Assembly (NCBI GenBank): GCA_950097015.1 | Contig: CATNEN010000011.1 | Location: 5,084,001 to 5,148,000 of the forward strand | Origin: Macrostomum hystrix | Lineage: Eukaryota > Animalia > Platyhelminthes | Length of the DNA stretch: 64,000 bases | Reading direction: 5' to 3' | Part shown: piece by piece, positions 1,137-64,000 of the stretch | Layout: each line of letters opens with the position of its first letter | Numbering within the stretch: position 1 is the first letter of the stretch | Notes under the pieces: model-generated | Database searches by the model: none | Told to the model about the DNA's origin: nothing | The model's input: only the letters and a program-made list of their open reading frames with translations | Position numbers and translations under genes: made by a program

Positions 1137-2439
1137 GTCCGATTTAACGAAATCGATACATATCGACTATCGACAGTTTAAACTGACTGACAATAGCGCG
1201 TGTAACAAAATTCAGTAATCTGTCATTTTCGGCGCAAAAACTTACAAAGTTTTCCTTTCTGTTTCATTACCAACATAATGTATAGGCTTTGGCTTTTTAT
1301 TCAAGAGCGATAATCTTGTCTAGAGGTTTTCCGAATCTTTAACTGTTTAAAGGGAGATTTTCAAAGCAATGTTTCTAGGAAATAAATCTTCTTTTTCTGA
1401 TTTGCAGTATATAGGTTCTTTGAAATATCTGGGTGACATTATGCCCATACTCTTTTTCAATTGAAACGCAACTAAAAATTGATACTATAAAAAATTGTAT
1501 TTGCCTGTGAAGACGTGGTACATTTACATGTGTATTCAAATTTCTATCAGGCTATTGCAGACTTGAAACAAAAACAGCTTTTGTTTAATTTTAATTTTCT
1601 GTTCTCTTCTCGTTTGTGCTTTTCGATGTGTGCCAGAATGTTTCTTAATGTTTTGAAACAATATATATTTGTTATGGCAAACAAATTCTATCCTTTTTGA
1701 GAGAAAACTCTAATTAATATACGAACTACGAGTATACTACTTTACTAGTAAATTTCGTTTACTTCCACTCGTACTTTTACTATTTTAAATGGTTGTAAGT
1801 ACATATGTGTACAATTTAACAAAAAATTTCCTGATTTATGACATTTTTATGACAATTTTTTGTCATAAAAAGTTAGCAATATTAAAACTTACATAATTAA
1901 AAGTAACAGTTAGTTATACTACTAGTACTAGCATTGGCTAAGTGATGTCCCGTGACATTTCCCTCGTCCCTTCCCTTCCCGATGACTCACCTTTTGTGAC
2001 CTTTACATGTCAAAACCTCTGCCGCGATTATAATCAAACCTTTCTTCTCTTTTGCCTGTCCAGCCCTCCCACCTCTCCTCTCTTTATCAATACGCACATC
2101 GGCATAAATTATTTTTTTTTTCGATTGCGCACCCACCCCCCTCCCTCCCTTTGTTCCCTAGGTAAATAAGTCATTTTCTTTACCAGTCGCGCACTCACCC
2201 CACTCCCATCCCGACCAATCACCGACCGGCTGGCGAAGCATGTGATATGGCTGTCCAGCAAACAGGTCAAGGTCGAGCTAAATCACGCGATCACGGCTCG
2301 GCTCTATATAGCGAGTGGTGTCGTGCGCCGTTTCGAGTAGACCTTTCCGACGTGACCGCGATCTGACCTTTGTTCGGGACCTTATTGTTCCTTTCCACCG
2401 TTAGGACCCCTGATCGGGACCCCTGGTCTTTTCTCCTTG

Positions 2440-2590
2440 GTCACTGGGATCTTGGCCACTGCAGTCACACCCCAAAGCTACCAAGTGCATCAGTGGTGGG
2501 GTAGTTACTGAGGGATGAGGCCCGGTTCTCTCATTGCCATCACTCAGGAGCTGCGACAGTGTGCACTGTATTACCGCGTGCACTGCTGCG
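2440..2590 (+). ncRNA. Candidate structured element, copy C (most diverged of three)
   Basis: Shares ordered motifs with 16.7 kb and 50.2 kb: TGCAGTCACA (2460), CCAAGTGCATCAGTG (2481), a long hairpin carrying GATGAG (2514), CTCAGGAG (2543), GCGACAGTGTGCA (2553). Confidence 0.3.
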
Positions 2591-9456: not shown

Positions 9457-9552
9457 ATGGGCACTTGCTTCAATAAATATTTACTGACCCAATTAGCTGC
9501 CCTGCTTTTTTCAAATCAAATCATTCCCCTTGCAACTTTTTGCTTATTGCTC

Positions 9553-10130
9553 AGTGAGTGCTCCGATTCTGGGTCATTGAGTGCTCAGATTCTGGGTCAG
9601 TGAGTGCTCACATTCTGGGTCAGTGAGTGCTCAGATTCTAGGTCAGTGAGTGCTCACATTCTGGGTCAATGAGTGCTCAGATTCTAGGTCAGTGAGTGCT
9701 CACATTCTGGGTCAATGAGTGCTCAGATTCTGGGTCAGTGAGTGCTCACATTCTGGGTCAGTGAGTGCTCAGATTCTAGGTCAGTGAGTGCTCACATTCT
9801 GGGTCAGTGAGTGCTCAGATTCTGGGTCAGTGAGTGCTCACATTCTGGGTCAATGAGTGCTCAGATTCTGGGTCAGTGAGTGCTCACATTCTGGGTCAGT
9901 GAGTGCTCAGATTCTAGGTCAGTGAGTGCTCACATTCTGGGTCAATGAGTGCTCAGATTCTAGGTCAGTGAGTGCTCACATTCTGGGTCAGTGAGTGCTC
10001 AGATTCTAGGTCTAGTGAGTGCTCACATTTTGGGTCAGTGAGTGCTCACATTCTGGGTCAGTGAGTGCTCACATTCTGGGTCAGTGAGTGCTCACATTCT
10101 GGGTCAGTGAGTGCTCACATTCTGGGTCAG
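9553..10130. repeat. 23-bp minisatellite (TTCTGGGTCAGTGAGTGCTCACA), ~24 copies
   Basis: Direct tandem units just downstream of the G-patch stop; each unit contains the mini-palindrome TGAG-TG-CTCA. Confidence 0.95.
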
Positions 10131-13351: not shown

Positions 13352-13764
13352 GTGAGTGACGTCATCATCGAGTAGTGCACTTTTAATTTCATTTCCGATT
13401 GTTTGTCGTCATTGGTGGCATTTTGAAGGTAGTTTTATTCCGCTAGTTAAACTGACTTCGTTGTTGCCCAAAATTAGCGCCTGGAAATAAAAAATATTCG
13501 CAAGGTATACAATGCTGTGACTGGAGATTGTGACTGGTCCTAATCGGCCTCCTATAACCTTATAATGCTAGGGCTCTACACACTTAATCTCATTTTTATA
13601 TCTAAGAATATAAAAATACTGCGAGCAGAACCAGTTTGCACACTCTGACGGGGGCTTATATCTATTGCAGTAACTGCTTCTTTTCTAAGTCAGTTCAGGC
13701 CAAGGTGAATTTAGTTAGAAACCAAAGAGTAAACAGAGCAACAGTCGCAGACGAAAGCAGAAGC

Positions 13765-16247
13765 ATGTCCAGTTACAATGTGAGCTGTCTACTCGACTCC
13801 GTGGCCAGTACAATTGGCGAAGGTCCATTCTGGGAGCCAATCACCAAGACGCTGTACTTTGTTAGCGCCTTTGATGGTCAAGTTCAAATTTGGAATGAGC
13901 CGAGTAATTATCGCGACACAATTCAGGTGGGAGATAAACCTGACGATTGCGTCAGCTTTGTGATACCCTGCCAGTCTGGGGGCTTCCTGGCTGGCCTGAA
14001 TAGGAGCATTGTGCACTGCGACTGGCAGGCTGGCCAGTTGAACAGGCGCCTACTTCACGAAGTAGATCCCGAGGAGCCCGTACGGTGAGTGACGACGTCG
14101 CGCGCAAGAATTTCGGCACCGGATTTTCATTACCTTGTTGTAAAAGCTGATGAAGTCAGTAATGAGCCGTCCATCCCGATGGCTTTTGAATTTTAATGTA
14201 TTGTGAAGTCCTCCGTTCAATTGCGCCATTTTCTCTTTTTCTTTGTTTCTTTCATAGGGCATTCTTTGTTTCAATGTCTGTTTTGAAATCTTAACGTATA
14301 GTAACGTCATCCCTTCAATTTATTCTCTCCGATTCGTTTGTAATTCTCACGTAAAGTGACGTCATCAAACCAATGACGCCATGCTCTCCGATTGCTTTGA
14401 AATGCAAACGTAAAGTGACGTCATCTACCCTATGACGTCATTCTCTCTTATTTGCAAAAATCATCCTTTAGTTTTAACGACGCCAAATGCGACCCCGCTG
14501 GACGACTTCTAGCTGGCACAATGAGCCTGGAGAAGGAGGCCGCCGTGCTAATCAAGCCAGGTGTTGGCAGTCTCTTTGGTATGGATCTAGACGGCTCCAT
14601 CAAACGGCTGGACAGTGGCTTCTCGCTAAGCAACGGCCTCGGTTGGCATGGCAACCAGTTTTACTTCACCGACTCCGTTGCTAGGACGATCTACGCCTAC
14701 GACTGGGACGCCGAAGGCTTCAGCGTCTCAAATCGTCGAGTCGCTATCGATTTCTCTAAGCTCCCTGACTCGGAACAGATCGGCGTGCCGGACGGCATGG
14801 CTGTCGACGCCGACGGCCGACTGTGGGTGGCCTGCTTCTTCGGATCGCGGATTCTCTGTCTGGACCCGACCACTGGCCAGGTAGTGAGCCAGATACCGCT
14901 GCCCGTGCCCAATGTCACCTCGTGCTGCTTCGGATCGGACGGAGAGCTGTTTGTCACCACGGCGAATCGGTGGGGCCAGAAACTCGATGCCGCTCCGGTG
15001 CCTCAGGTGCGCGACGTTTTTCTGGCTCTCACCTAGGGTTCGGACTCCAACATAGGTTAGACTTCAGGTGGAAGGTAGACTTCTCAGGTCGTAGGTTAGA
15101 CTTCTCAGGTCGTAGGTTAGACTTCTCAGGTCGTAGGTTAGACTTCTCAGGTCGTAGGTTAGACTTCAGTTGAAAGGGTAGACTTCTCAGGTCGTAGGTT
15201 AGACTTCTCAGGTCGTAGGTTAGACTTCTCAGGTCGTAGGCTAGACTTCTCAGGTCGTAGGTTGTAGACTTCAGGGCATAGGTTGTAGACTTCAGAGTAT
15301 AGGTTTTAGACTTCAGGGCATAGGTTGTAGACTTCAGGGCATAGGTTGTAGACTTCAGGGTGTAGGTTGTAGACTTCAGGGTGTAGGTTGTAGACTTCAG
15401 GGCATAGTTTGTAGACTTTAGGGTGTAGGTTGTAGACTTCAGGGTGTAGGTTGTAGACTTCAGGGCATAGGTTGTAGACTTCAGGGTGTAGGTTGTAGAC
15501 TTCAGGGTGTAGGTTGTAGACTTCAGGGCATAGGTTGTAGACTTCAGGGTGTAGGTTGTAGACTTCAGGGTGTAGGTTGTAGACTTCAGGGTGTAGGTTG
15601 TAGACTTCAGGGCATAGGTTGTAGACTTCAGAGTATAGGTTTTAGACTTCAGGGCATAGGTTGTAGACTTCAGGGCATAGGTTGTAGACTTCAGGGTGTA
15701 GGTTGTAGACTTCAGGGTGTAGGTTGTAGACTTCAGGGCATAGTTTGTAGACTTCAGGGTGTAGGTTGTAGACTTCAGGGTGTAGGTTGTAGACTTCAGG
15801 GCATAGGTTGTAGACTTCAGGGTGTAGGTTGTAGACTTCAGGGTGTAGGTTGTAGACTTCAGGGCATAGTTTGTAGACTTCAGGGTGTAGGTTGTAGACT
15901 TCAGGGTGTAGGTTGTAGACTTCAGGGCATAGGTTGTAGACTTCAGGGTGTAGGTTGTAGACTTCAGGGTGCAGGTTGTACTTGAGGGCGTAGGTTAGAC
16001 TTCAGGTCGTTAGAATATTTGACTTAATGCGTTGTGGTGATTTTACTTCAGGTAATTAGTTTAAACAGAGTTCAGGTGCTAAGTTAAGTAGACTTCTAAT
16101 CCCAATCGTCCTACGATAGCAAAATCCCATCCAATGGCAATTGTACCATTGCAGGCTGGAAGCGTGTTTCGCGTCACCGGTCTTGACGGAATCCGCGCCA
16201 CACCCAGCGTGATGTACAAGGGTGCCCTGCCTCCGGCCAATGAGTAA
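13765..16247 (+). CDS. RGN: Regucalcin / SMP-30 / gluconolactonase family protein
   Basis: Exon 1b 13765-14084, exon 2 14472-15006 (R|FNDAKCDPAGR, SNGLGW, PDGMAVD), exon 3 16155-16247 (AGSVFRVTGLDGIRATPSVMYKG...*). Splice phases are consistent and the metal-ligand E, N, N, D positions are present. Confidence 0.93.
14357..14440. promoter_or_regulatory. Cluster of three perfect CRE palindromes TGACGTCA (14357, 14416, 14433) in regucalcin intron 1
   Basis: Exact matches inside a ~60-bp local duplication; a fourth lies at 13357 beside the exon 1a donor. Confidence 0.35.
15045..16010. repeat. ~20-bp minisatellite (GTAGGTT(GT)AGACTTC(TC)AGG(G/T)) in regucalcin intron 2
   Basis: Two related unit types in tandem, visible directly. 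Confidence 0.95.
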
Positions 16248-16619: not shown

Positions 16620-16850
16620 ATGCTGGAGGTCCCTGAGCTCCATTCAGCGGCGAGGCCACGATCATTTGGGGCGCAGTCGCGTAGAGAAGGCTTGGGGGGC
16701 TTGTCGTGCAATTTACGCCCTTGAGGGCCAACCTCCAAGGCACAGTGAGAGTGTACACTGCCTGACGATGAGAAAGTCAGGACCGATGTACACACCTGTG
16801 TGCGTGTGTGCTCAGGAGTCAGCGAAATGTGCAGAATTTTTTCCTGGCAG
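16620..16850 (+). ncRNA. Candidate structured element, copy A
   Basis: GC-rich island in AT-rich DNA. Helices CCTGAC/GTCAGG, GTGTACA/TGTACAC, CACAG/CTGTG, TGGAGGT/ACCTCCA, CCTGAGC/GCTCAGG; motifs shared with 50.2 kb and 2.5 kb. Confidence 0.45.
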
Positions 16851-17436
16851 GCTGTGGGTCTAGTGCCACCAAATGATGTTCTATTACAAGTATTAACCTA
16901 TCAATGCGTGTCTGTAGCTTTCACTGTCATTTCCACAGTTACTAAAGACCTTGTTGTAAAGTACGCCTTGCTTCGTTTTTATCTAGTTTGTTTTTACAGA
17001 TATGTGAAGGTCACAGATGCAAACTACTAGTTTAACAGTTGAATTCCCTTGTGTAGCACGCATATCAAATGTCAGCGAATGCCTAGCAAAAGTTGAGTGA
17101 CTTGTGTCAATCAAAATTTTTGTAAGCTAGTCCCATGGTTCTCAAAAGTGAAGATGCTCTCACAGTTTTGTATTTTTATATTGCTTTTGTTGCCATATGA
17201 CTGCTATTAAAGGCAGTATTTGAGCACAAAAATTTACGGTGTGTGCTCAACGTAGGACAAAGCTTCATAACCTTAAAGGCCTCTGGGAAAACACACGGAC
17301 CCGCACTCACACATGGGTGGCGCTATTGGCTGCATTTTCTGCAAGAATCTATCGATCGATGGATTCCATGCAGGACACGATGAAAACGACGATACCGCAA
17401 GGCAACCTGAAGGTAAATTGTGCTCTGCTTCTGAGG

Positions 17437-25864: not shown

Positions 25865-26410
25865 AGATTCTAGCTGCGATTCTAGCAACGGTTCTTGCTG
25901 CGATACTAGCTTTGGTTCTTGCTGCGATACTAGCTTTGGTTCTTGCTGCGATACTAGCTTTGGTTCTAGCTGCGATACTAGCTTTGGTTCTTGCTGCGAT
26001 ACTAGCTTTGGTTCTTGCTGCGATACTAGCTTTGGTTCTTGCTGCGATTCTAGCTTTGGTTCTTGCTGCGATTCTAGCTTTGGTTCTTGCTGCGATACTA
26101 GCTTTGGTTCTTGCTGCGATTCTAGCTTTGGTTCTTGCTGCGATACTAGCTTTGGTTCTTGCTGCGATTCTAGCTTTGGTTCTTGCTGCGATTCTAGCTT
26201 TGGTTCTTGCTGCGATACTAGCTTTGGTTCTTGCTGCGATTCTAGCTTTGGTTCTTGCTGCGATTCTAGCTTTGGTTCTTGCTGCGATTCTAGCTTTGGT
26301 TCTTGCTGCGATTCTAGCTTTGGTTCTTGCTGCGATTCTAGCTTTGGTTCTTGCTGCGATACTAGCTTTGGTTCTTTCTGCGATTCTAGCTTTGGTTCTT
26401 GCCGCGATTC
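25865..26410. repeat. 24-bp minisatellite (GCTTTGGTTCTTGCTGCGAT(A/T)CTA), ~22 copies
   Basis: Perfect tandem array just past the FAM102 stop; one stray unit near 26715-26735. Confidence 0.95.
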
Positions 26411-26474: not shown

Positions 26475-28673
26475 TCATGAGTACAGATAATTAAAAGTGC
26501 GGCCGTGTTCAGTTATCGGAGGGCCAACAATACGAATGCCTTCCTGTTCCAAAACTTCACGAACGATTTTAAAATTGTCCGTCCTAGTGTTGGCGATGCG
26601 GCTGTTTGCTTCTCTGGTCGATGTGAGGGCAACCTGTAGGAGGTTCGGCACCACGGCTGATTGCAACTAAGATTTCTAAGAATCATGTAGTACGCTTGCT
26701 TTTTAAGCAATTGTTCCTGCTGCGATTCTAGCTACAGATATTGTAGCTTGAATTTTAAAGTAGATTATTTAGAACCCTTATCTAAATCTCTAATGCCATC
26801 AACCCGTTTTTTACTTTTAATTTTTCAATTGAAGTACTTTACCCGTTTTCTCTCCAGACTGGATGGCAAATGAAGGTCAAACGACGGCACACTAGACGAC
26901 TGACTCGGACTGGAAAATAAATTAGAGAAAATTCAACGATCAGAGAGGGTGAGAAAGTGAGACAGTAAAAATCGGTTATCGAACTCAAGACGCTGTGGTA
27001 TCGCAAGAATTAACTGAGACTCACACTAGGGTATCCTGCTCTAAACTGTTAGTCCGGCTGTGCGTCCTGAAGGAGCCGAATGAGAAATTTGACGAATTTC
27101 GACAATGAGCAGCAGCAGCAGCAGAAGACGAGGTGGCAGCAACAGCAGCAGTAGCTAAAGAGCTATTGGCTGTGGAACTATTCGGATCGATAATTAAATT
27201 TGATATAGCCAGGCGCTCTCCGTGACCAATCAGTTTAGCAGCAACGGCAGCAGCAGCAGCTCCTGAAATTCCATTTTCATCCGCTTCCTTGACGGCCGCC
27301 GAGTCAGCGCCGACCGCTGCAACAGCTGGTGTCGCATGATTTGTCAGCCGCCGAATGCCCAGCCTGAGGGTGCTATTGTCCAGCCTCTGTCTCTGATTAT
27401 AGGGACTCAGAATGCAGCTGTGCTCAGCTGAGTCAGATAGGCCGGCAGCCGATTGAGCCGTGCCGAGCAGTTCAGTCAGGTTGAGCACAGCGAAGCCCAG
27501 TTTTGAGTAGGACCGACCGCCGCGCTCCTCTTTGCGCACGGAGACTCGAAGAGCGACTGGAGGCACGCCAGGACACGAATCACCAAGGCGACAGGCGAAC
27601 TCCATGGGACTCTGATCGACCCAAGCCACCTGCGCGACAACATGATTTTGATTTTATTTCAAGATTCTTGTTATAGTGCATCCACATTCTAGTTTATTTG
27701 AGTTTAAGATTCTAGTTTATTGGAGTTTTAAGATACTAGTTTATTTGAGTTTAAGATTCTAGTTTATTGGAGTTTTAAGATTCTAGTTTATTTGAGTTTA
27801 AGATTCTAGTTTATTGGAGTTTTAAGATACTAGTTTATTTGAGTTTAAGATTCTAGTTTATTGGAGTTTTAAGATTCTAGTTTATTGGAGCTTAAGATAC
27901 TAGTTTATTGGGGTTTTTTATTTTAGTTTATTGGAGTTTAAGATTCTAGTTTATTGGAGTTTAAGATTCTAGTTTATTGGAGTTTTAAGATTCTAGTTTA
28001 TTTTAGTTTAATATTCTAGTTTTTTGGAGTTTAAGATTCTAGTTCATTGGAATTCAAGATTCTAGTTTATTGGAGTTTAAGATTCAAGTTTATTGGAGTT
28101 TAAGATTCTAATTTATTGGAGTTTAAGATTCTAATTTATTGGAGTTCAAGATTCTAGTTTATTGGAGTTCAAGATTCTAGTTTATTGGAGTTTAAGATTC
28201 TAGTCTATTGGAGTTCAAGATTCTAGTTTATTGGAGTTTAAGATTCTAGTTTATTGGAGTTCAAGATTCTAGTTTATTGGAGTTTAAGATTCTAGTTTAT
28301 TGGAGTTTAAGATTCTAGTCCATTGGAATTCAAGATTCTAGTTTATTTGAGCTTAAGATTCTAGTTTATTTGAGCTTAAGATTCTAGTTTATTTGAGCTT
28401 AAGATTCTAGTTTATTTGAGTTTAATATTCTAGTTTATTACAGTGGGTGACAGCAGTATTTAAGCTCTAACTTTATACCTTATTGTCGCGTATTTCTTTC
28501 CGAGCTGAGTAGGCACAGAATCTGCCACCATTGAGCAGGCGAATCTTAGCAAACAGCACCCCATTGCTAAGTGTGACACCCTCTAGTTCAATGAGTTGAA
28601 GTTGGACCCGTTGTTTGTGAGGACTTCTTTGATCATGATGACTATTTAAGCCCATTTGAGAGCAGCAGAACAT
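26475..28673 (-). CDS. FAM102: FAM102/EEIG family protein (N-terminal NT-C2 domain), 4 exons
   Basis: Exons 28673-28479 (NGVLFAKIRLLNGGRF), 27629-27025 (LRVSVRKEERGGRSYSKLGFAVLNL, RLDNSTLRL), 26909-26843, 26666-26475 (SRIANTRTD). Phases 0/2/0 are consistent; the 3' end is less certain. Confidence 0.85.
27685..28438. repeat. 23-bp AT-rich minisatellite (ATTCTAGTTTATTGGAGTTTAAG) in FAM102 intron 1
   Basis: About 32 tandem units. Confidence 0.95.
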
Positions 28674-38182: not shown

Positions 38183-41100
38183 TCACTGCGGCGGCTGCTG
38201 CTGCTGCTGCTTGCAGTGTCTGGCGTGCATGTGCTGGGCCACCTGGTACACGTGAGTCACATCCGGCCTGGCGTCCGGATTCGAGCTGATCATCGTGACA
38301 ACCAGCTCGCGCAGCTGATCAGTGTGGTTGAGGAATGCCTTTGAAACCAGCCTACCCACCCAACCCAACATTCCCATGCCTCCACCCACCCAACCCAACA
38401 TTCCCATGCCTCCACCCACCCAACCCAACATTCCCATGCCTCCACCCACCCTACCTACCCCACAGATTCCCATGCCTCCACCCACCCTACCTACCCCACA
38501 GATTCCCATGCCTCCACCCACCCTACCTACCCAACGATTCCCATGGCTCCACCCACCCTACTACCCCACAGATTCCCATGCCTCCACCCACCCTACCTAC
38601 CCCACAGATTCCCATGCCTCCACCCACCCTACCTACCCCACAGATTCCCATGCCTCCACCCACCCTACCTACCCCACAGATTCCCATGCCTCCACCCACC
38701 CTACCTACCCAACGATTCCCATGGCTCCACCCACCCTACTACCCCACAGATTCCCATGCCTCCACCCACCCTACTACCCCACAGATTCTCATGCCTCCAC
38801 CCACCCTACCTACCCCACAGATTCCCATGCCTCCACCCACCCTACCTACCCAACGATTCCCATGGCTCCACCCACCCTACTACCCCACAGATTCTCATGC
38901 CTCCACGCACCCTACTACCCCACATACTCCCATGCCTTTACCCAAACTATTTCTTTGCCTCCAAATTAACCTACCCAAACATCTACTCAACTTACCCACG
39001 CATCTACTCAAACTACCCAAGCATCTACTCAACCTACCAACGCCTCTACACAAACATCGAACTCAAGCCTTACCTCGGCCGAGTAAATGTCAGCCGGCAG
39101 CGGTGGATAGTCGCACTGTTCAATTTTCTTGCACAATGAGTACAGGTTCATTTGCTCGCCGTAGAAGGGGCTCTGCAGGGCGGCCATTTCGTACAGCAGG
39201 CAGCCAAGAGACCACATGTCCGACTTGAAATTGTAGCCAGTTTCATGAATTCTCTCAGGACTCATGTAGTAAGGCGTGCCAACTGGAACAACAGAAATAC
39301 TTCTATTTTTATCTATCACGCAAGCCAATATGTATTAAACGAGATTTTTTCACAACATATCGGCTCACCCAAAGAATGAGCATTCGTTGTCTTGGAGCTG
39401 AAGAACCTGCCAAGACCCAGGTCGCCAAGCTTCACCTGCCCGGTGGCTGTGATGAACACGTTGGCGGGCTTGATGTCTGCGATGAAAACGGGTCTCATAG
39501 ATCTATATCACCGTAGATCTATATTTAAGATTTCTTAAGCTTTTAAGCAGTCTTCAAATCCCTGGTCTTATAGGACCCGCCTATCATATCTCACCTCTGT
39601 GCATGATCCTCTTGGAGTGCATGTGATCTAGGCCGCTGCAGATCTGTACAAAGTACTTCCAAATTGTTCGCTCGGGTATTAAACGTTGCTGCTTTTTGAA
39701 GTGCTGAAATTGGCAAACAACCTCACGACTATCAAAGAAGTGGTAACAAATTTTCAGATTCCTTTCAGCGTCCTAACCCATTTTATCAGGTTTCAAATCC
39801 AGTTTTTTCTGATTCCAAATCTATGTTCTCAGATTCCGAATTCTATTTATCAGATTCCGAATTCTGTTTATCAGATTCCGAATTCTGTTTATCAGATCCT
39901 GAATTCTGTTTATCAGATTCCGAATTCTGTTTATCAGATCCTGAATTCTGTTTATCAGATCCTGAATTCTGTTTATCAGATCCTGAATTCTGTTTATCAG
40001 ATTCAGAATTAAGATTTATTAGATTCCGAATTCTGTTTATCAGATTCAGAATTAAGATTTATCAGATTCAGAATTCTGTTTATCAGATCCTGAATTCTGT
40101 TTATCAGATTCAGAATTAAGATTTATTAGATTCCGAATTCTGTTTATCAGATTCAGAATTAAGATTTATCAGATTCCGAATTCTGTTTATCAGATCCTGA
40201 ATTCTGTTTATCAGATTCCGAATTCTGTTTATCAGATCCTGAATTCTGTTTATCAGATCCTGAATTCTGTTTATCAGATTCCGAATTCTGTTTATCAGAT
40301 CCTGAATTCTGTTTATCAGATCCTGAATTCTGTTTATCAGATCCTGAATTCTGTTTATCAGATCCTGAATTCTGTTTATCAGATTCCGAATTCTGTTTAT
40401 CAGATTCCGAATTATGTTTATCAGATTCAGAATTAAGATTTATCAGATTCCGAATTCTGTTTATCAGATCCTGAATTCTGTTTATCAGATTCCGAATTCT
40501 GTTTATCAGATCCTGAATTCTGTTTATCAGATCCTGAATTCTGTTTATCAGATTCCGAATTCTGTTTATCAGATCCTGAATTCTGTTTATCAGATCCTGA
40601 ATTCTGTTTATCAGATCCTGAATTCTGTTTATCAGATCCTGAATTCTGTTTAACAGATTCCGAATTCTGTTTATCAGATCCTGAATTCTGTTTATCAGAT
40701 CCTGAATTCTGTTTATCAGATCCTGAATTCTGTTTATCAGATTCCGAATTCTGTTTGTCAGATTCCGAATTCTGTTTATCAGATTCCGAATTCTGTTTAT
40801 CAGATTCAGAATTAAGATTTATCAGATTCCGAATTCTGTTTATCAGATCCTGAATTCTGTTTATCAGATTCCGAATTCTGTTTATCAGATCCTGAATTCT
40901 GTTTATCAGATCCTGAATTCTGTTTATCAGATTCCGAATTAAGATTTATCAGATCCTGAATTCTGTTTATCAGAGTCAGAATTAAGATTTATCAGATTCC
41001 GAATTCGGTTTATGCGATCCTGAATTCAGTTTATCAAACTCCGAATTCAGTTTTTAGATTCCGAATTCAGTCTATCAGATTCCGAATTCAGTTTACCAGA

Positions 41101-41934
41101 TTCCGAATTCAGTTTATCAGATTCCGAATTCAGTTTACCAGATCCTGAATTTAGTTTATCAGATTCCGAATTCAGTTTACCAGATCCTGAATTTAGTTTA
41201 TCAGATTCCGAATTCAGTTTACCAGATCCTGAATTTAGTTTATCAGATTCCAGTTTCTCTGGAATCCAGTTTCTCTTATTTCTTATCCAGCTTCGGATTA
41301 CAAATCCAGTCTTGTCATTTTCCTAATCCAGTTATTTTAGTACCAATCATCACTAATAGTAACTATTAGTAGAGTTGGGCTAATATAAATCAATAGAAGC
41401 TGCACAAACCCGGATCATGCGCGAAAGATCCCCTGCGTCCGCCAATTCTAGGACAATGTTGAGCTCATTGTTCTCGATAAATGATGCCAAATAACGGATT
41501 ACATTGGGGTGGTCGAGTTGCTGAAAGAGTTTTTAAGCAATTATCTTATAATAATGATTTCATACGCAGAACATATTTCGTTATAATTTGTTAGCAAAGC
41601 ATGCTGCGCACCTTCAGCAGGTCAATCTCCTTGATGCAGTCCTGCCTTGCCTTCGCGTCCATCATTTCGAAGATCTAAAATAGTGGCGAATTGTGATAAA
41701 GTTTAGTGTTAAACTAAAAAAATTTATTACATTCAAAAAACAAGACAATAGACATTCTAGTATCAGCCAGACCTGAACTTTTTTCAAAGCCACAATGCAG
41801 CCATCCTCCTTGCACACTGCACGCCAGACTTCACTAAACTGGCCTTTGCCAATCTTCTTGTCAATGTTGAACTTGTCCAGTGAGCCATATTTGTTCTGAG
41901 GATCATAGCTGGGCACACCAAAGTCCACTTCCAT
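38183..41934 (-). CDS. NEK7: NIMA-related kinase NEK6/7, 7 exons, 297 aa
   Basis: Exons 41934-41773, 41674-41612, 41520-41410, 39703-39595, 39476-39369, 39282-39074, 38314-38183; all phases consistent. Motifs [42 protein letters not shown]. Confidence 0.96.
38345..38940. repeat. C-rich ~36-bp minisatellite in the NEK7 last intron
   Basis: CCCATGCCTCCACCCACCCTACCTACCCCACAGATT-type units. Confidence 0.92.
39810..41250. repeat. 21-bp minisatellite (GAATTCTGTTTATCAGAT(T/C)C(C/T)) in NEK7 intron 3, ~68 units
   Basis: Direct inspection; an EcoRI site occurs in most units. Confidence 0.97.
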
Positions 41935-50069: not shown

Positions 50070-50310
50070 ATGTGGTCCGATTGCGATCGATCGCAACCGA
50101 GGAGAGAACCAAATTTGGGCCTTTTCAGGCAATTCGCGCCATTGAACGTATTCCGAGGCATAGTGATGGTGTGACAGTGACAGTGACGATGAGAAAGTCA
50201 CTGAGAGTCAATGAGAAAGGCAGTTGTAAATACCTTCGTGTTAGTGTTCGCACAGGAGTCAGCCGGCATGTGCAAAAATGAAATTATTCGCTGGCTGCAC
50301 GGCTCGAATT
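50070..50310 (+). ncRNA. Candidate structured element, copy B
   Basis: GCAATTCGCGCC (50129), CCGAGGCATAGTGA (50153), CAGTGAC-GATGAGAAA-GTCACTG (50181-50203), CAGGAGTCAGC (50253) and ATGTGCA (50268), in the same order as copy A. Confidence 0.45.
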
Positions 50311-50525
50311 TTAAATGATGCGCCAGTGCCCACAGCCCAATTGTTATGTAATTTTGAGTTCTTATTAATTCTTTAGCTTCAAGCTTCGTACAAAAGTCTA
50401 GTTATTTGTTTCTCTATAACTGCAAAGCGCTGTTGTCGATTTGTATTATTCGTTGATGTTTTTGCCTTGGAATTTTTCATATAAATTTGTGTAGAGTCTG
50501 ATGTTGGCCGTTATTAAACAGCTCA

Positions 50526-52938
50526 CTATGAGATGAGTTCAATGTCTTCTAGGACCCTTCCTCGATTGACATTTGCCGCCGACTGCAACAGCTCCGACCT
50601 CGGCGTTGGAGCCACTTTGGACGGACGAAATTTGAACGGCAGAGCGCGACTCCCTCTGCTGCTGACTGGCCATCGCAGTTTGACAGCCGCGGCTAGAGCG
50701 ACCAGGATCACAGCTGACGCAATGATGACACTTGAAACTAGAAAGGAAGTTAGCAATTCTAGGAACCAGTTGTCGCGTGGTACCACAGGTTGAGTTGTCC
50801 GCGGCGAGGTTGCCGAAGTTGGATTGACTTTTGTTCTAGTTTGAGTTGACTGTGAACTGGCCGTCTGGTCCGTGATTCCGGGTGGGGGTGGACTTGTGAA
50901 GTTGGCTATGATTTCATCCGTGATATCAGCTGATGTGGAAGGATCAGTTGCTGTTGGTTCCTTATTCCCATCCGTTCCTGAAGTAAACGATGTCATCCTC
51001 TCTGAGGTGAGTCCCGTTTGTTTAGTCGAATCGAAAGTTGTTTTAGGCGTCGAAGCCTCTAAATTAGTTGGTACTTGCTCTGTTGCAGTTGCCTCTGGAG
51101 TTGTTAGCCCTGTTGTCGTTGTCTCTGGAGTTGTTGTCTCTGGAGTTGTTGTCTCTGGAGTTGTTGTCTCTGGAGTTGTTGTCTCTAGTGTTGTTGTCTC
51201 TGGAGTTGTTGTCTCTGGAGTTGTTAGCCCTGTTGTCGTTGTCTCTGGAGTTGTTGTCTCTGGAGTTGTTGTCTCTGGAGTTGTTGTCTCTGGAGTTGTT
51301 GTCTCTGGAGTTGTTGTCTCTGGAGTTGTTGTCTCTAGTGTTGTTGTCTCTGGAGTTGTTGTCTCTGGTGTTGCAGTTGCCTCTGGAGTTGTTAGCCCTG
51401 TTGTCGTTGTCTCTGGAGTTGTTGTCTCTGGAGTTGTTGTCTCTGGAGTTGTTGTCTCTGGAGTTGTTATCTCTGGAGTTGTTGTCTCTAGTGTTGTTGT
51501 CTCTGGAGTTGCAGTTGCCTCTGGAGTTGTTGTCTCTGGAGTTGTTGTCTCTGGAGTTGTTGTCTCTGGAGTTGTTGTCTCTGGAGTTGTTGTCTCTGGA
51601 GTTGTTGTCTCTGGAGTTGTTGTCTCTGGAGTTGTTGTCTCTGGAGCGGTTGTCTCTGGAGCGGTTGTCTCTGGAGCGGTTGTCTCTGGAGCGGTTGTCT
51701 CTGGAGTTGTTGTCTCTGGTGTTGTAGGTTCAAGTGTCGTTTCTTCAGTTGTACTTTGTTTAGTGGTAGCTTCCGTGATAGTAGTTGACTCCGTTGTTGT
51801 AATGGGATCGCTAACTTTGCAAATATGCCAGATTGTCTCATTTCCTAAATTGTTTCGATACTTTATTCGGCTGTCAGACAGCTCTGTAATTGCCGACTGG
51901 AAATTCTGTCGATTCGGAGGTAAGCGGTGATTCAGGTACCAGTCTGCGATTGATCTGTAATTTAGAAAGATCTACTGATTATGCCAACACTGCTTCCGAA
52001 ATCTACGCATAGAGACACAGATAATGTCTCACAGAATTGTGTCTTTCACTGGCGGTCCATTGCCTCTTTCCCAATAGAAGCCGAAAGGTTCACGTGGCTC
52101 CCTGTACAGCGCCACCCAGGCCGCCTCCAACAGTCCGCAGTTCTTGCATTTGTCACGCTGCGACCTCAGATCCCAGGCCTGTCTGTCGACCCAGTTCTGC
52201 GAAGACAATTAAGTTGTCGGGTGGGGTAATTTACAACTTCTGATAGCTAGCTCTTTTGGGTCATCGTCAACTAAAGGAGATGTCAACTGAAGGCTTTAAA
52301 ATGGAGCCCGAGGTCCATCCTCTAACCATTTTTTCTATTTATTTAGTTATTTTTAGTTATTATTCTAGTTATTTTTTATCAAAAAATCAAAATAAAAAAT
52401 CAAACTATCTAAACTTAATTCTGCTCACAAAATTACATCCTGTGTCAGATGACTTTGAAAGTACGCGCTCGTAAGTTTTGATCGGTCATTCGGTTTGGGT
52501 GCTATCATGAAGTAGGCAGTGCTTGGGTCTTTGAAATACAGCCGTGGTCTTCCCCCCTGGGGAAATATGGTGCTGTTTCTACTTTTAAGAGGGATACAAA
52601 GTGCCTAGTCATGTGGGTCAGGTGTAAAGGTCCAAATAAACAGTTTTTTGTGGTTCAATGAAAACAATGACCTACATCGAAGCACTATAATATACCTTCT
52701 CATCCAGTGAATCGAGCCAGAGCAGTCCGCCGTATTCATGCAACTCCCGACAATGAGTCCGCGCCCGAGCGTGCGTCTGACCAAATTCTCCGCCAACTAG
52801 CAGGTAGCAGCTGTCGCCGTAGCTTAGCCAGGTGGAGTCCGGGCAGTCGATGCATCGGACAATTCTGACACCAACCAAAACGATAAGTGCAATGGCTAGA
52901 TTAGTGACAACGGTTTTAACGAAATGGCAAGCTAACAT
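50526..52938 (-). CDS. Type I membrane C-type lectin-like protein with a PETTT mucin stalk, 3 exons, ~611 aa
   Basis: Exon 1 52938-52696 (signal peptide, CPDSTWLSYGDSCY, ARTHC), exon 2 52196-52033 (WVAL..FYW), exon 3 51954-50526 (WHICK, ~40 15-bp PETT(T/A) repeats, TM segment, tail ending EDIELIS*). Phases 0/2 are consistent. Confidence 0.85.
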
Positions 52939-54254: not shown

Positions 54255-54900
54255 TGAAGTAGTGATGCACTGTGGTAGTGACGGACTGTGGTAGTGACGG
54301 ACTGTGGTAGTGATGCACTGTGGTAGTGATGCACTGTGGTAGTGACGGACGGTGGTAGTGATGCACTGTGGTAGTGACGGACTGTGGTAGTGATGCACTG
54401 TGGTAGTGATGCACTGTGGTAGTGATGGACTGTGGTAGTGATGCACTGTGGTAGTGATGGACTGTGGTAGTGACGGACTGTGGTAGTGATGGACTGTGGT
54501 AGTGATGGACTGTGGTAGTGACGGACTGTGGTAGTGACGGACTGTGGTAGTGATGGACTGTGGTAGTGATGGACTGTGGTAGTGAAGGACTGTGGTAGTG
54601 ATGGACTGTGGTAGTGATGCACTGTGATAGTGATGGACTGTGGTAGTGATGCACTGTGGTAGTGACGGACTGTGGTAGTGATGCTCTGTGGTAGTAACGG
54701 ACTGTGGTAGTGATGCACTGTGGTAGTGACGGACTGTGGTAGTGATGCACTGTGGTAGTGACGGACTGTGGAAGTGACGGACTGTGGTAGTGACGGACTG
54801 TGGTAGTGACGGACTGTGGTAGTGATGCACTGTGGTAGTGATGCACTGTGGTAGTGATGGACTGTGGTAGTGATGGACGGTGTTAGTGACGGACTGTGAC
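54255..54900. repeat. 16-bp minisatellite (CTGTGGTAGTGA(C/T)G(G/C)A), ~40 units
   Basis: Direct inspection. Confidence 0.95.
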
Positions 54901-56344: not shown

Positions 56345-56785
56345 TTCTACTCCTTGGATAATGGGTTCAAGGGTTCTACCCCTTGGATAATAGGTTCAAG
56401 GGTTCTACCCCTTGGATAATAGGTTCAAGGGTTCTACCCCTTGTATAATGGGTTCAAGGGTTCTACCCCTTGGATAATGGGTTCAAGGGTTCGACCCCTT
56501 GGATAATGGGTTCAAGGGTTCTACCCCTTGGATAATGGGTTCAAGGGTTCTACCCCTTGGATAATGGGTTCAAGGGTTCTACCCCTTGGATAATGGGTTC
56601 AAGGGTTCTACCCCTTGGATAATGGGTTCAAGGGTTCGACCCCTTGGATAATAGGTTCAAGGGTTCTACCCCTTGGATAATGGGTTCAAGGGTTCTACCC
56701 CTTGGATAATGGGTTCAAGGGTTCTACCCCTTGGATAATGGGTTCAAGGGTTCGACCCCTTGGATAATGGGTTCAAGGGTTCAAC
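56345..56785. repeat. 29-bp minisatellite (CCCCTTGGATAATGGGTTCAAGGGTTCTA), ~15 units
   Basis: Direct inspection. Confidence 0.95.
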
Positions 56786-58964: not shown

Positions 58965-59680
58965 TTAAATCTCAGATCCCAAATCCCAGATCCCAGATCC
59001 CAGATCCCAAATCCCAAATCCTAGATCCCGAATTCCAAATTCCAAGTCCCAAATTAAAAGTACCAAATCACTGATCCCAAATCTCAGATCCGAAATTACA
59101 AATCTCAGATACCAAATCTCAAATCCCAAATCCCAAATCCCAAATTCCAAGTCCCAAATCCAAAATCCCAGATCCCAGATCCCAGATTCCAAATCCCAAA
59201 TCCCAGATCCCAAATCCCAGATCCCAAATCCCAGATCCCAAATCCCAGATCCCAAATCCCAGATCCCAAATCCCAGATCCCAAATCCCAGATCCCAAATC
59301 CCAGATCCCAAATCCCAGATCCCAAATCCCAGATCCCAAATCCCAGATCCCAAATCCCAGATCCCAAATCCCAGATCCCAAATCCCAGATCCCAAATCCC
59401 AGATCCCAAATCCCAGATCCCAAATCCCAGATCCCAAATCCCAGATCCCAAATCCCAGATCCCAAATCCCAGATCCCAAATCCCAGATCCCAAATCCCAG
59501 ATCCCAAATCCCAGATCCCAAATCCCAGATCCCAAATCCCAGATCCCAAATCCCAGATCCCAAATCCCAGATCCCAAATCCCAGATCCCAAATCCCAGAT
59601 CCCAAATCCCAGATCCCAAATCCCAGATCCCAAATCCCAGATCCCAAATTCCAAATCTCTGATCGTAAATCCCAAATCAC
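58965..59680. repeat. 7/14-bp microsatellite (ATCCCAG ATCCCAA)n
   Basis: Direct inspection. Confidence 0.97.
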
Positions 59681-60059: not shown

Positions 60060-61535
60060 CATGTCTAACAGATGTCTAACAGATAGCGTAACTGATTAGA
60101 ACAGGTATCACAGATGTCTAACAGATAGCATAACTCATTAGAACAGGTATCACAGATGTCTAACAGATAGCATAACTCATTAGAACAGGTATCACAGATG
60201 TCTAACAGATAGCATAACTCATTAGAACAGGTATCACAGATGTCTAACAGATAGCATAACTCATTAGAACAGGTATCACAGATGTCTAACAGATAGCGTA
60301 ACTGATTAGAACAGGGATCACAGATGTCTAACAGATAGCGTAACTGATTAGAACAGGTATCACAGATGTCTAACAGATAGCATAACTCATTAGAACAGGT
60401 ATCACAGATGTCTAACAGATAGCGTAACTGATTAGAACAGGTATCACAGATGTCTAACAGATAGCGTAACTGATTAGAACAGGTATCACAGATGTCTAAC
60501 AGATAGCGTAACTCATTAGAACAGGTATCACAGATGTCTAACAGATAGCGTAACTCATTAGAACAGGTATCACAGATGTCTAACAGATAGCGTAACTCAT
60601 TAGAACAGGTATCACAGATGTCTAACAGATAGCATAACTCATTAGAACAGGTATCACAGATGTCTAACAGATAGCATAACTCATTAGAACAGGTATCACA
60701 GATGTCTAACAGATAGCATAACTCATTAGAACAGGTATCACAGATGTCTAACAGATAGCATAACTCATTAGAACAGGTATCACAGATGTCTAACAGATAG
60801 CATAACTCATTAGAACAGGGATCACAGATGTCTAACAGATAGCGTAACTGATTAGAACAGGGATCACAGATGTCTAACAGATAGCGTAACTGATTAGAAC
60901 AGGTATCACAGATGTCTAACAGATAGCATAACTCATTAGAACAGGTATCACAGATGTCTAACAGATAGCGTAACTGATTAGAACAGGTATCACAGATGTC
61001 TAACAGATAGCGTAACTCATTAGAACAGGTATCACAGATGTCTAACAGATAGCGTAACTCATTAGAACAGGTACCACAGATGTCTAACAGATAGCGCAAC
61101 TGATTAGAACAGGTATCATAGATGTCTAACAGATAGCATAACTCATTAGAACAGGTATCACAGATGTCTAACAGATAGTATAACTCATTAGAACAGGTAT
61201 CACAGATGTCTAACAGATAGCGTAACTCATTAGAACAGGTACCACAGATGTCTAACAGATAGCGCAACTGATTAGAACAGGTATCATAGATGTCTAACAG
61301 ATAGCATAACTCATTAGAACAGGTATCACAGATGTCTAACAGATAGCGTAACTGATTAGAACAGGGATCACAGATGTCTAACAGATAGCGTAACTGATTA
61401 GAACAGGGATCACAGATGTCTAACAGATAGCGTAACTGATTAGAACAGGTATCACAGATGTCTAACAGATAGCGTAACTGATTAGAACAGGGATCACAGA
61501 TGCCTAACAGATAGCGTAACTGATTAGAACAGGTA
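60060..61535. repeat. 42-bp minisatellite (GATGTCTAACAGATAGC(A/G)TAACT(C/G)ATTAGAACAGGTATCACA), ~35 units
   Basis: Direct inspection. Confidence 0.97.
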
Positions 61536-61987
61536 TCCCATCTGCCTGATTAGAAAACTATTGCTTTTTGTGCTGGTGACATAACTTAATCCAACAGGAA
61601 AACAATAAATAAAAAGGACACGAAGACACTATCTACAGGTAATTATGCTCCAAACTAATACACTAGACTGTCACATTAGCTAAAGGGGTATCCAAATCGA
61701 CCTTATTTACTGTTTGTGTCTATTAGGAAAGCGAGCCAGACCTCCTAAATCTATATTGTGCGACGTTTAAGACAAATGAAAAGTACACAGTCTGGAAGTT
61801 TCGCGTCTCCTAGGGTAGGTAAATTGCATATCTGTTAACAGCTCTGATTGGCAGGCAGTTAGGTAGATAGCTGTCTATACTTTTTTCCTGACTCTAAACT
61901 GCTCCTTTCAGAATCGACTAATCAGTAGAATTCTACTAATTGCTCTATTGTTGCTATGCAAACTGTTGTCATGGCAACCGATACTAG

Positions 61988-62369: not shown

Positions 62370-62910
62370 GGTGGCTGAACCCTTTTTAAATCCAATGTGG
62401 CTGAACCCCTACCTCAAAAACCAAAACGGCTGAACCCCCTTACCCAAATCCAATGTGGCCGAATCCTCACCCTGAAATCCAAGGTAGTCGAACCCCCTTA
62501 GACAAATCCAAGGTGGTCGAACCCCCTTACCCAAATCCAAGGTGGCCGAACCCCGTTACCCAAATCCAAGGTGGTCGAGCCCCCTAACCCAAATCCAATG
62601 TGGCCGAATCCTCACCCTGAAATCCAAGGTAGTCGAACCCCTTTAGACAAATCCAAGGTGGTCGAAACCCCTTACCCAAATCCAAGGTGGCCGAACCCCG
62701 TTACCCAAATCCAAGGTGGTCGAGCCCCCTTACCCAAATCCAAGGTGGCCGAATCCTCACCCTGAAATCCAAGGTAGTCAAACACCTTTTAACAAATCCA
62801 AGGTGGTCGAAACCCCTTACCCAAATCAAAGGTGGCCGAACCCCTAGCCCGAAATTTAAAGTGGCCGAACCACCTTACCAAAATCCAAAATCCAAGGTGG
62901 CCGAAACCTG
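62370..62910. repeat. Degenerate ~29-bp repeat (CCAAATCCAAGGTGGTCGAACCCCTTAC)
   Basis: Repeated units following the Ig exon donor. Confidence 0.88.
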
Positions 62911-63429: not shown

Positions 63430-64000
63430 CACCTCACTTCCTTTCCTTCCCGTTACCCTCCGTTTCTCTCGTCCTATTTCCATTTTCTCTCTTCGGCTTC
63501 CGATTTTCCTTTTTATGTTCCCCTTTCCATACTAATATTTTTCCCCTTTCCATTTTCCTCTTTTTATTCCACTTCCCATTTCCTATCTTTCTTCCCCTTT
63601 CCATTTCCTCTCTTTCTTCCCCTTCCCATTTCCTCTCTTTATTCCCCTTCCCATTTTCCAATTTACATTCCCCTTTCCATTTCCTCTCTTTCTTCCCCTT
63701 CCCATTTCTTCTCTTTCTTCCCCTTCCCATTTTCCACTTTATATTCCCCTTTCCATTTCCTGTCTTTCTTCCCCTTCCCGTTTTCCTAACTTTCTTTCCC
63801 TTCCCATTTCCTCTCTTTTTTTCCCCTTCCCATTTCTTCTTTTTCTTCACCTTCCTATTTTCCACTTTATATTCCCCTTTTCATTTCCTGTTTTTCTTCC
63901 CCTTCCCATTTTCCTAACTTTCTTTCCCTTTCCATTTCCTCTCTTTCTTCCCCTTTCCATTTCCTCTCTTTCTTCCCCTTCCCATTTCTTCTCTTTCTTC
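63430..64000. repeat. CT-rich polypyrimidine ~25-bp repeat running off the window end
   Basis: TTTCTTCCCCTTCCCATTTCCTCTC-type units. Confidence 0.92.

Follow-up and report, generated by a model that had tools for sequence, protein, structure and literature searches.

Stringent-type tRNA-derived SINEs possess a 3′ stem-loop and a short repeat tail that are recognised by a partner LINE (e.g. eel UnaSINE1/UnaL2). They are the closest known kind to the repeat family described here, with which they share a head carrying A- and B-box-like motifs, a unique body, and a 3′-terminal GC stem-loop with a short tandem repeat after it, as well as TSDs, 5′ truncation, and copies numbering in the thousands. 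The family differs from these SINEs in that its head is weakly tRNA-like and its tail unit is ATT. More broadly, SINE superfamilies are set by a shared central domain, and those recognised include CORE, V, Deu, Ceph, Meta, Nin-DC, and Snail (PMC4824008, PMC4758252, PMC11481361). SINEs with such domains resemble the present family, compared by layout alone, in their division into head, body, and tail, the middle part being conserved and structured. Retroelements that carry ribozymes (LINEs with an HDV-like ribozyme at the 5′ end; hammerhead-bearing Sm-alpha or retrozyme-like elements) are alike in producing repeated, GC-rich, hairpin-rich RNA, but no ribozyme model matches the SINE family on either strand, an intact copy included (E ≤ 10).

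Here, we analyse a stretch of 64,000 nucleotides (hereafter ‘the window’) in which a first-pass annotation had noticed three GC-rich islands, at 2.4, 16.6, and 50 kb, all carrying the same short motifs in the same order. Islands and motifs are indeed present at these positions, amid AT-rich DNA. The annotation took the islands for three copies of one element; this relationship holds for the 16.6-kb and 50-kb islands, which are homologous, but not for the 2.4-kb island. Very probably, the two homologous islands are defunct members, differing in age, of a single abundant SINE family in an animal genome, which is probably spiralian. The 16.6-kb island (copy A) is an ordinary SINE insertion, the 50-kb island is an older relative, and the 2.4-kb island is unrelated. 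The SINE itself is a non-autonomous host repeat and not a virus. The features concerned are the following:

2421–2551, plus strand: member of a separate and older interspersed repeat family (34 genomic matches at 72–85% identity)
16627–16892, plus strand: copy A, a 5′-truncated SINE (nhmmer E 5e-93, consensus positions ~46–310)
16751–16793, plus strand: long hairpin within the SINE body (9-nt loop, GATGAGAAA), placed by the family alignment
50090–50348, plus strand: older headless SINE copy (nhmmer E 4e-28, consensus positions ~89–324)
50181–50203, plus strand: hairpin with this loop unchanged but its stem altered (CAGTGAC/GTCACTG), inside a local GTGACA tandem run

A search of the 220-Mb genome with copy A as the query returned 2134 first-look candidates; 40 of these were scored over query positions 28–280 of copy A, and all 40 are 88–92% identical. 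The 19-mer at the hairpin tip, CTGACGATGAGAAAGTCAG, occurs exactly 2,950 times in the same 220 Mb, about equally on both strands and across contigs, versus zero occurrences of the reversed control. Additional copies were met by chance in loci retrieved for unrelated reasons.

Aligned with their flanks, these copies delimit an interspersed repeat unit of ~325 bp plus tail, short and non-coding, for which a majority consensus of genomic copies was derived. Full-length copies share one 5′ end, at which a G-run (GGGGG) precedes a head of ~75 nt. This head contains an A-box-like motif, TGGCAGAGCGG, and, ~45 nt from it, a B-box-like motif, AGTTCGATTCC, each agreeing at 10 of 11 positions with the consensus given for its box in textbooks. 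Located 3′ of the head is a GC-rich body of ~250 nt made up of local hairpins, and it is this body that the first-pass annotation had seen. That annotation had listed the head of a non-tRNA SINE among its options: the stretch is indeed part of a SINE, but it is the body rather than the head, and the head of the family is tRNA-like. The 3′ end forms a stem-loop with a 9-bp GC stem (GGCTGCGGG/CCCGCAGCC), and in most full-length copies the sequence closes with …CCTCCTGCA followed by an (ATT)n tail.

The likeness of the head to tRNA is faint. ARAGORN draws a tRNA-Glu(CTC)-like cloverleaf in the head only at the 70% threshold; at default settings, it reports no tRNA in the 64-kb window or in 13 loci, and the Rfam tRNA model, applied to an intact copy, yields no match at E ≤ 10. 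A tRNA origin of the head is only weakly indicated.

TSDs of 8–14 bp directly adjoin the two ends in ~7 of 26 full-length copies (e.g. 14 bp in L015 and 12 bp each in L028 and L017). Most full-length copies are without an exact duplication of at least 8 bp, and the fraction that retains one is roughly what a decay of ~5–8% per copy would leave. Among the 43 matches that reach the 3′ region of the SINE, 27 begin at or before consensus position 8, and the other 16 are 5′-truncated at scattered positions. It is the copy number, together with the common 5′ end, the box-like motifs, the (ATT)n tail, the TSDs, and the 5′ truncations, that identifies the family as a SINE.

From what is known of SINE biology, a life cycle can be proposed for it. 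Master copies would be transcribed by RNA polymerase III from the internal boxes; the reverse transcriptase of a partner LINE would recognise the 3′ stem-loop and the repeat tail of the transcript; and target-primed reverse transcription would insert a copy of the RNA in the genome, a process expected to leave TSDs and frequent 5′ truncations. Copy A would then be a product truncated at consensus position 46, and the 50-kb copy one without the whole head. Since copy A has no A box and the 50-kb copy no head, both are presumably inert and undergoing neutral decay. The series of motifs and the helices that had attracted attention would be an inheritance from the SINE master and not something maintained at the window loci.

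The present state of the two copies can be read directly from their alignment to the consensus. Copy A, at 93% identity, is missing the A box and retains a mutated B-box remnant, and its last ~30 nt are degraded along with the (ATT)n tail. The 3′ arm of its long hairpin is already mutated (GGACCG versus GGGCAG in the consensus); in the consensus, the inner pairs of this hairpin have pairing probabilities of 0.89–0.99. The first three bases of the TGGAGGT of copy A (16624–16626), one strand of a helix proposed in the first-pass annotation, belong to the flanking DNA and lie outside the repeat. The 50-kb copy is 78% identical to the consensus. Like copy A, it contains, in this order, the hairpin, whose 9-nt loop GATGAGAAA is the same in both copies, CAGGAGTCAGC, and TGTGCA. 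The 19-mer spanning its changed stem, GTGACGATGAGAAAGTCAC, is found at a single site in all 220 Mb of the genome; the swapped stem (GTGAC...GTCAC), considered as a subfamily feature, was rejected on this count as private to the 50-kb copy. At the 3′ stem, the CG steps have become CA in both arms of this copy, so that the pairs are broken and not compensated.

The 2.4-kb island was tried as a third copy of the SINE and rejected. In a first alignment of the islands, copy A resembled the 50-kb island, and the fit of the 2.4-kb island was poor and gappy. When the window was searched with an HMM derived from SINE copies elsewhere in the genome, the only matches were at 16627–16892 and 50090–50348, and the 2.4-kb island gave no nhmmer match to this HMM at E ≤ 10. 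Its local alignment to the SINE consensus scored 23, versus 17.8 ± 2.3 for dinucleotide shuffles, of which 12 of 300 did equally well or better. It belongs instead to a repeat family of its own, the consensus of which is without the CAGGAG and TGTGCA motifs present in the island, and, at the level detectable by such comparisons, it appears unrelated to the SINE. The conserved sequence of that other repeat (at least 34 copies; loci L035–L045) reaches ~150 nt upstream of the match in the window.

Compared with shuffled sequences, the fold of the intact young copy L021 has a z score of −5.0, that of copy A −1.15, and that of the 50-kb copy +0.24; fold stability is lost in old copies and kept in the intact one. 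The intact SINE master is strongly structured, probably for its own retroposition. One may go further and suppose that the body is a selected RNA module on which retroposition depends, made up of a 16-bp hairpin with a GAUGAGAAA loop and of the GC stem-loop at the 3′ end; this extension is tentative, and we rate it as rather unlikely. Were it correct, the module might bind the reverse transcriptase of the partner LINE or might correspond to a central domain shared with SINEs of other phyla, and the family would be a member of an undescribed SINE superfamily in a poorly sampled animal lineage. The body may be faintly similar to the ‘CCTTGAG...AAGGCAC’ motif of the Deu type.

The first-pass annotation had described compensatory base changes among the islands. 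To assess them, the minimum-free-energy structure of the consensus was mapped onto diverged copies, and substitutions were permuted among columns sharing the same consensus base. The 50-kb copy keeps 54 pairs, versus 49.4 ± 3.5 in the null (P = 0.11), and has 6 two-sided changes, versus 3.9 in the null (P = 0.19); for copy A, the permutation test gives P = 0.21. In neither copy do compensatory changes exceed the permutation null. The fragmentary copy L039 gave P ~0.01 from an alignment covering less than half of the pairs, and no weight was given to it. The long-range helix said to join the first and last motifs was likewise rejected: the bases of its 3′ strand pair instead within a strong local hairpin, its pairing probability in the intact consensus is ~0, and enforcing it costs ~10 kcal/mol.

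At the gathering score, Rfam has no match anywhere in the 64-kb window. At E ≤ 10, copy A has none, the 50-kb copy matches only a snoRNA at chance level (E 5.5, 13.6 bits versus a gathering score of 50 bits), and the intact copy L021 only sR19, also at chance level (E 2.1). The hammerhead, HDV-like, twister, pistol, and hatchet models of Rfam match neither strand of copy A, the 50-kb copy, or the intact L021 at this same threshold of E ≤ 10.

These results bear on a rival explanation, namely that the SINE body contains a functional structured RNA module—a new self-cleaving ribozyme or a protein-binding domain—with the hairpin of the invariant GAUGAGAAA loop as its core and the window copies as instances of it. 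The departure of the intact copy from shuffled sequences (z −5.0) speaks for such a module, as does a 9-nt loop that is identical between two copies otherwise 78% alike, but no Rfam ribozyme matches at E ≤ 10, no catalytic-core motif was found, covariation does not rise above the null, and the swapped stem is confined to a single copy. We also know of no need for self-cleavage in a Pol III SINE, and count this against a ribozyme. On balance, we consider the explanation highly improbable. The first-pass annotation had proposed a new conserved fold, perhaps a self-cleaving RNA, in three copies with covariation; two of the three are related, their covariation is at chance level, their folds are shuffle-like, and no ribozyme match was obtained at E ≤ 10, even with an intact copy. 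Among the outcomes that it had itself named as speaking against its proposal, two were observed: covariation was not significant, and one island resembled the motifs no more closely than shuffled controls. At the window loci, we see nothing that points to a new ribozyme or to a conserved structured RNA.

Returning to the reading of the islands as remnants of a LINE-dependent SINE, a partner was sought in the genome, which holds ~2000 reverse-transcriptase candidates in several length classes. BLAST and nhmmer searches of the 30 best reverse-transcriptase loci (the match ±1.5 kb) revealed no SINE body or tail in a LINE context; all that these loci yielded was a SINE insertion and a tail of (AAT)n, the opposite repeat unit to (ATT)n. 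One young LINE family (loci L050–L067) has an intact ORF of ~1153 aa and many near-identical copies (in L052, the reverse transcriptase is at 1501–2265). In this family, (AAT)n is situated ~1.2 kb downstream of the reverse-transcriptase domain and is probably the 3′ tail.

The same loci weigh on the suggestion that the copies are 5′-truncated 3′ ends of a LINE and not a separate SINE. Truncation at the 5′ end and a simple-repeat tail are both present, as this would demand, but 27 of the 43 copies share their start, which is a Pol III-type head, longer versions were not seen, and 0 of the 30 reverse-transcriptase loci carry the SINE body or tail in a LINE context; we regard this origin as scarcely credible. 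Hardly any credence can be given either to a MITE or another non-autonomous DNA transposon, which would likewise be short, abundant, non-coding, and hairpin-rich, since the ends of the repeat are asymmetric (a GGGGG-tRNA-like start versus an (ATT)n tail) and without terminal inverted repeats in the alignment, the TSDs vary in length (8–14 bp), and the truncations are at the 5′ end.

Within the SINE family, copies differ by insertions. Some old copies, among them the 50-kb copy (window positions 50205–50225) and L033 (L033:1410–1758), have in common an insertion of ~20 nt directly 3′ of the hairpin, in which the GAGAAAG loop segment is duplicated, and other copies have an insertion of ~15 nt (…GCCTGCGTACAGTATCTG…) further 3′. 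Judged from these sequences, the differing insertions point to several candidate SINE subfamilies. Scans of metagenomes for relatives of the SINE gave none that is real (two 19-mer matches were without further similarity), and a literature search for its motifs returned primer coincidences.

The family makes up ~1 Mb or more of the genome, and its importance beyond annotation is small. With the family masked, many spurious leads of the ‘structured RNA’ or ‘ribozyme’ kind would disappear. If the body were a central domain shared across phyla, or if the LINE partner were found, the family would provide a data point for SINE evolution in under-sampled animals.

Elsewhere, the window contains regucalcin exons and an unusual wealth of minisatellites, with periods of 14–42 bp and 15–67 copies:

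13636–15036: regucalcin/SMP-30 exons (Pfam SGL, E 5e-47)
126–792, 9551–10130, 15075–16010, 25868–26410, 27686–28439, 38370–38944, and 39829–41251: minisatellite arrays
51088–51725, 54259–54898, 56345–56782, 58967–59657, 60068–61537, 62388–62888, and 63509–64000: further minisatellite arrays

The closest protein to the regucalcin is 81% identical and comes from a transcript assembly; the best named match, from the annelid Owenia, is at only 42%, which suggests that public protein sets cover the host lineage poorly. The minisatellite arrays account for the strong GC-skew spikes and for most of the long ORFs that have no Pfam match. An ORF of 400 aa at 60065–61267 consists of a 42-bp repeat, and its Pfam matches are spurious and of low complexity.
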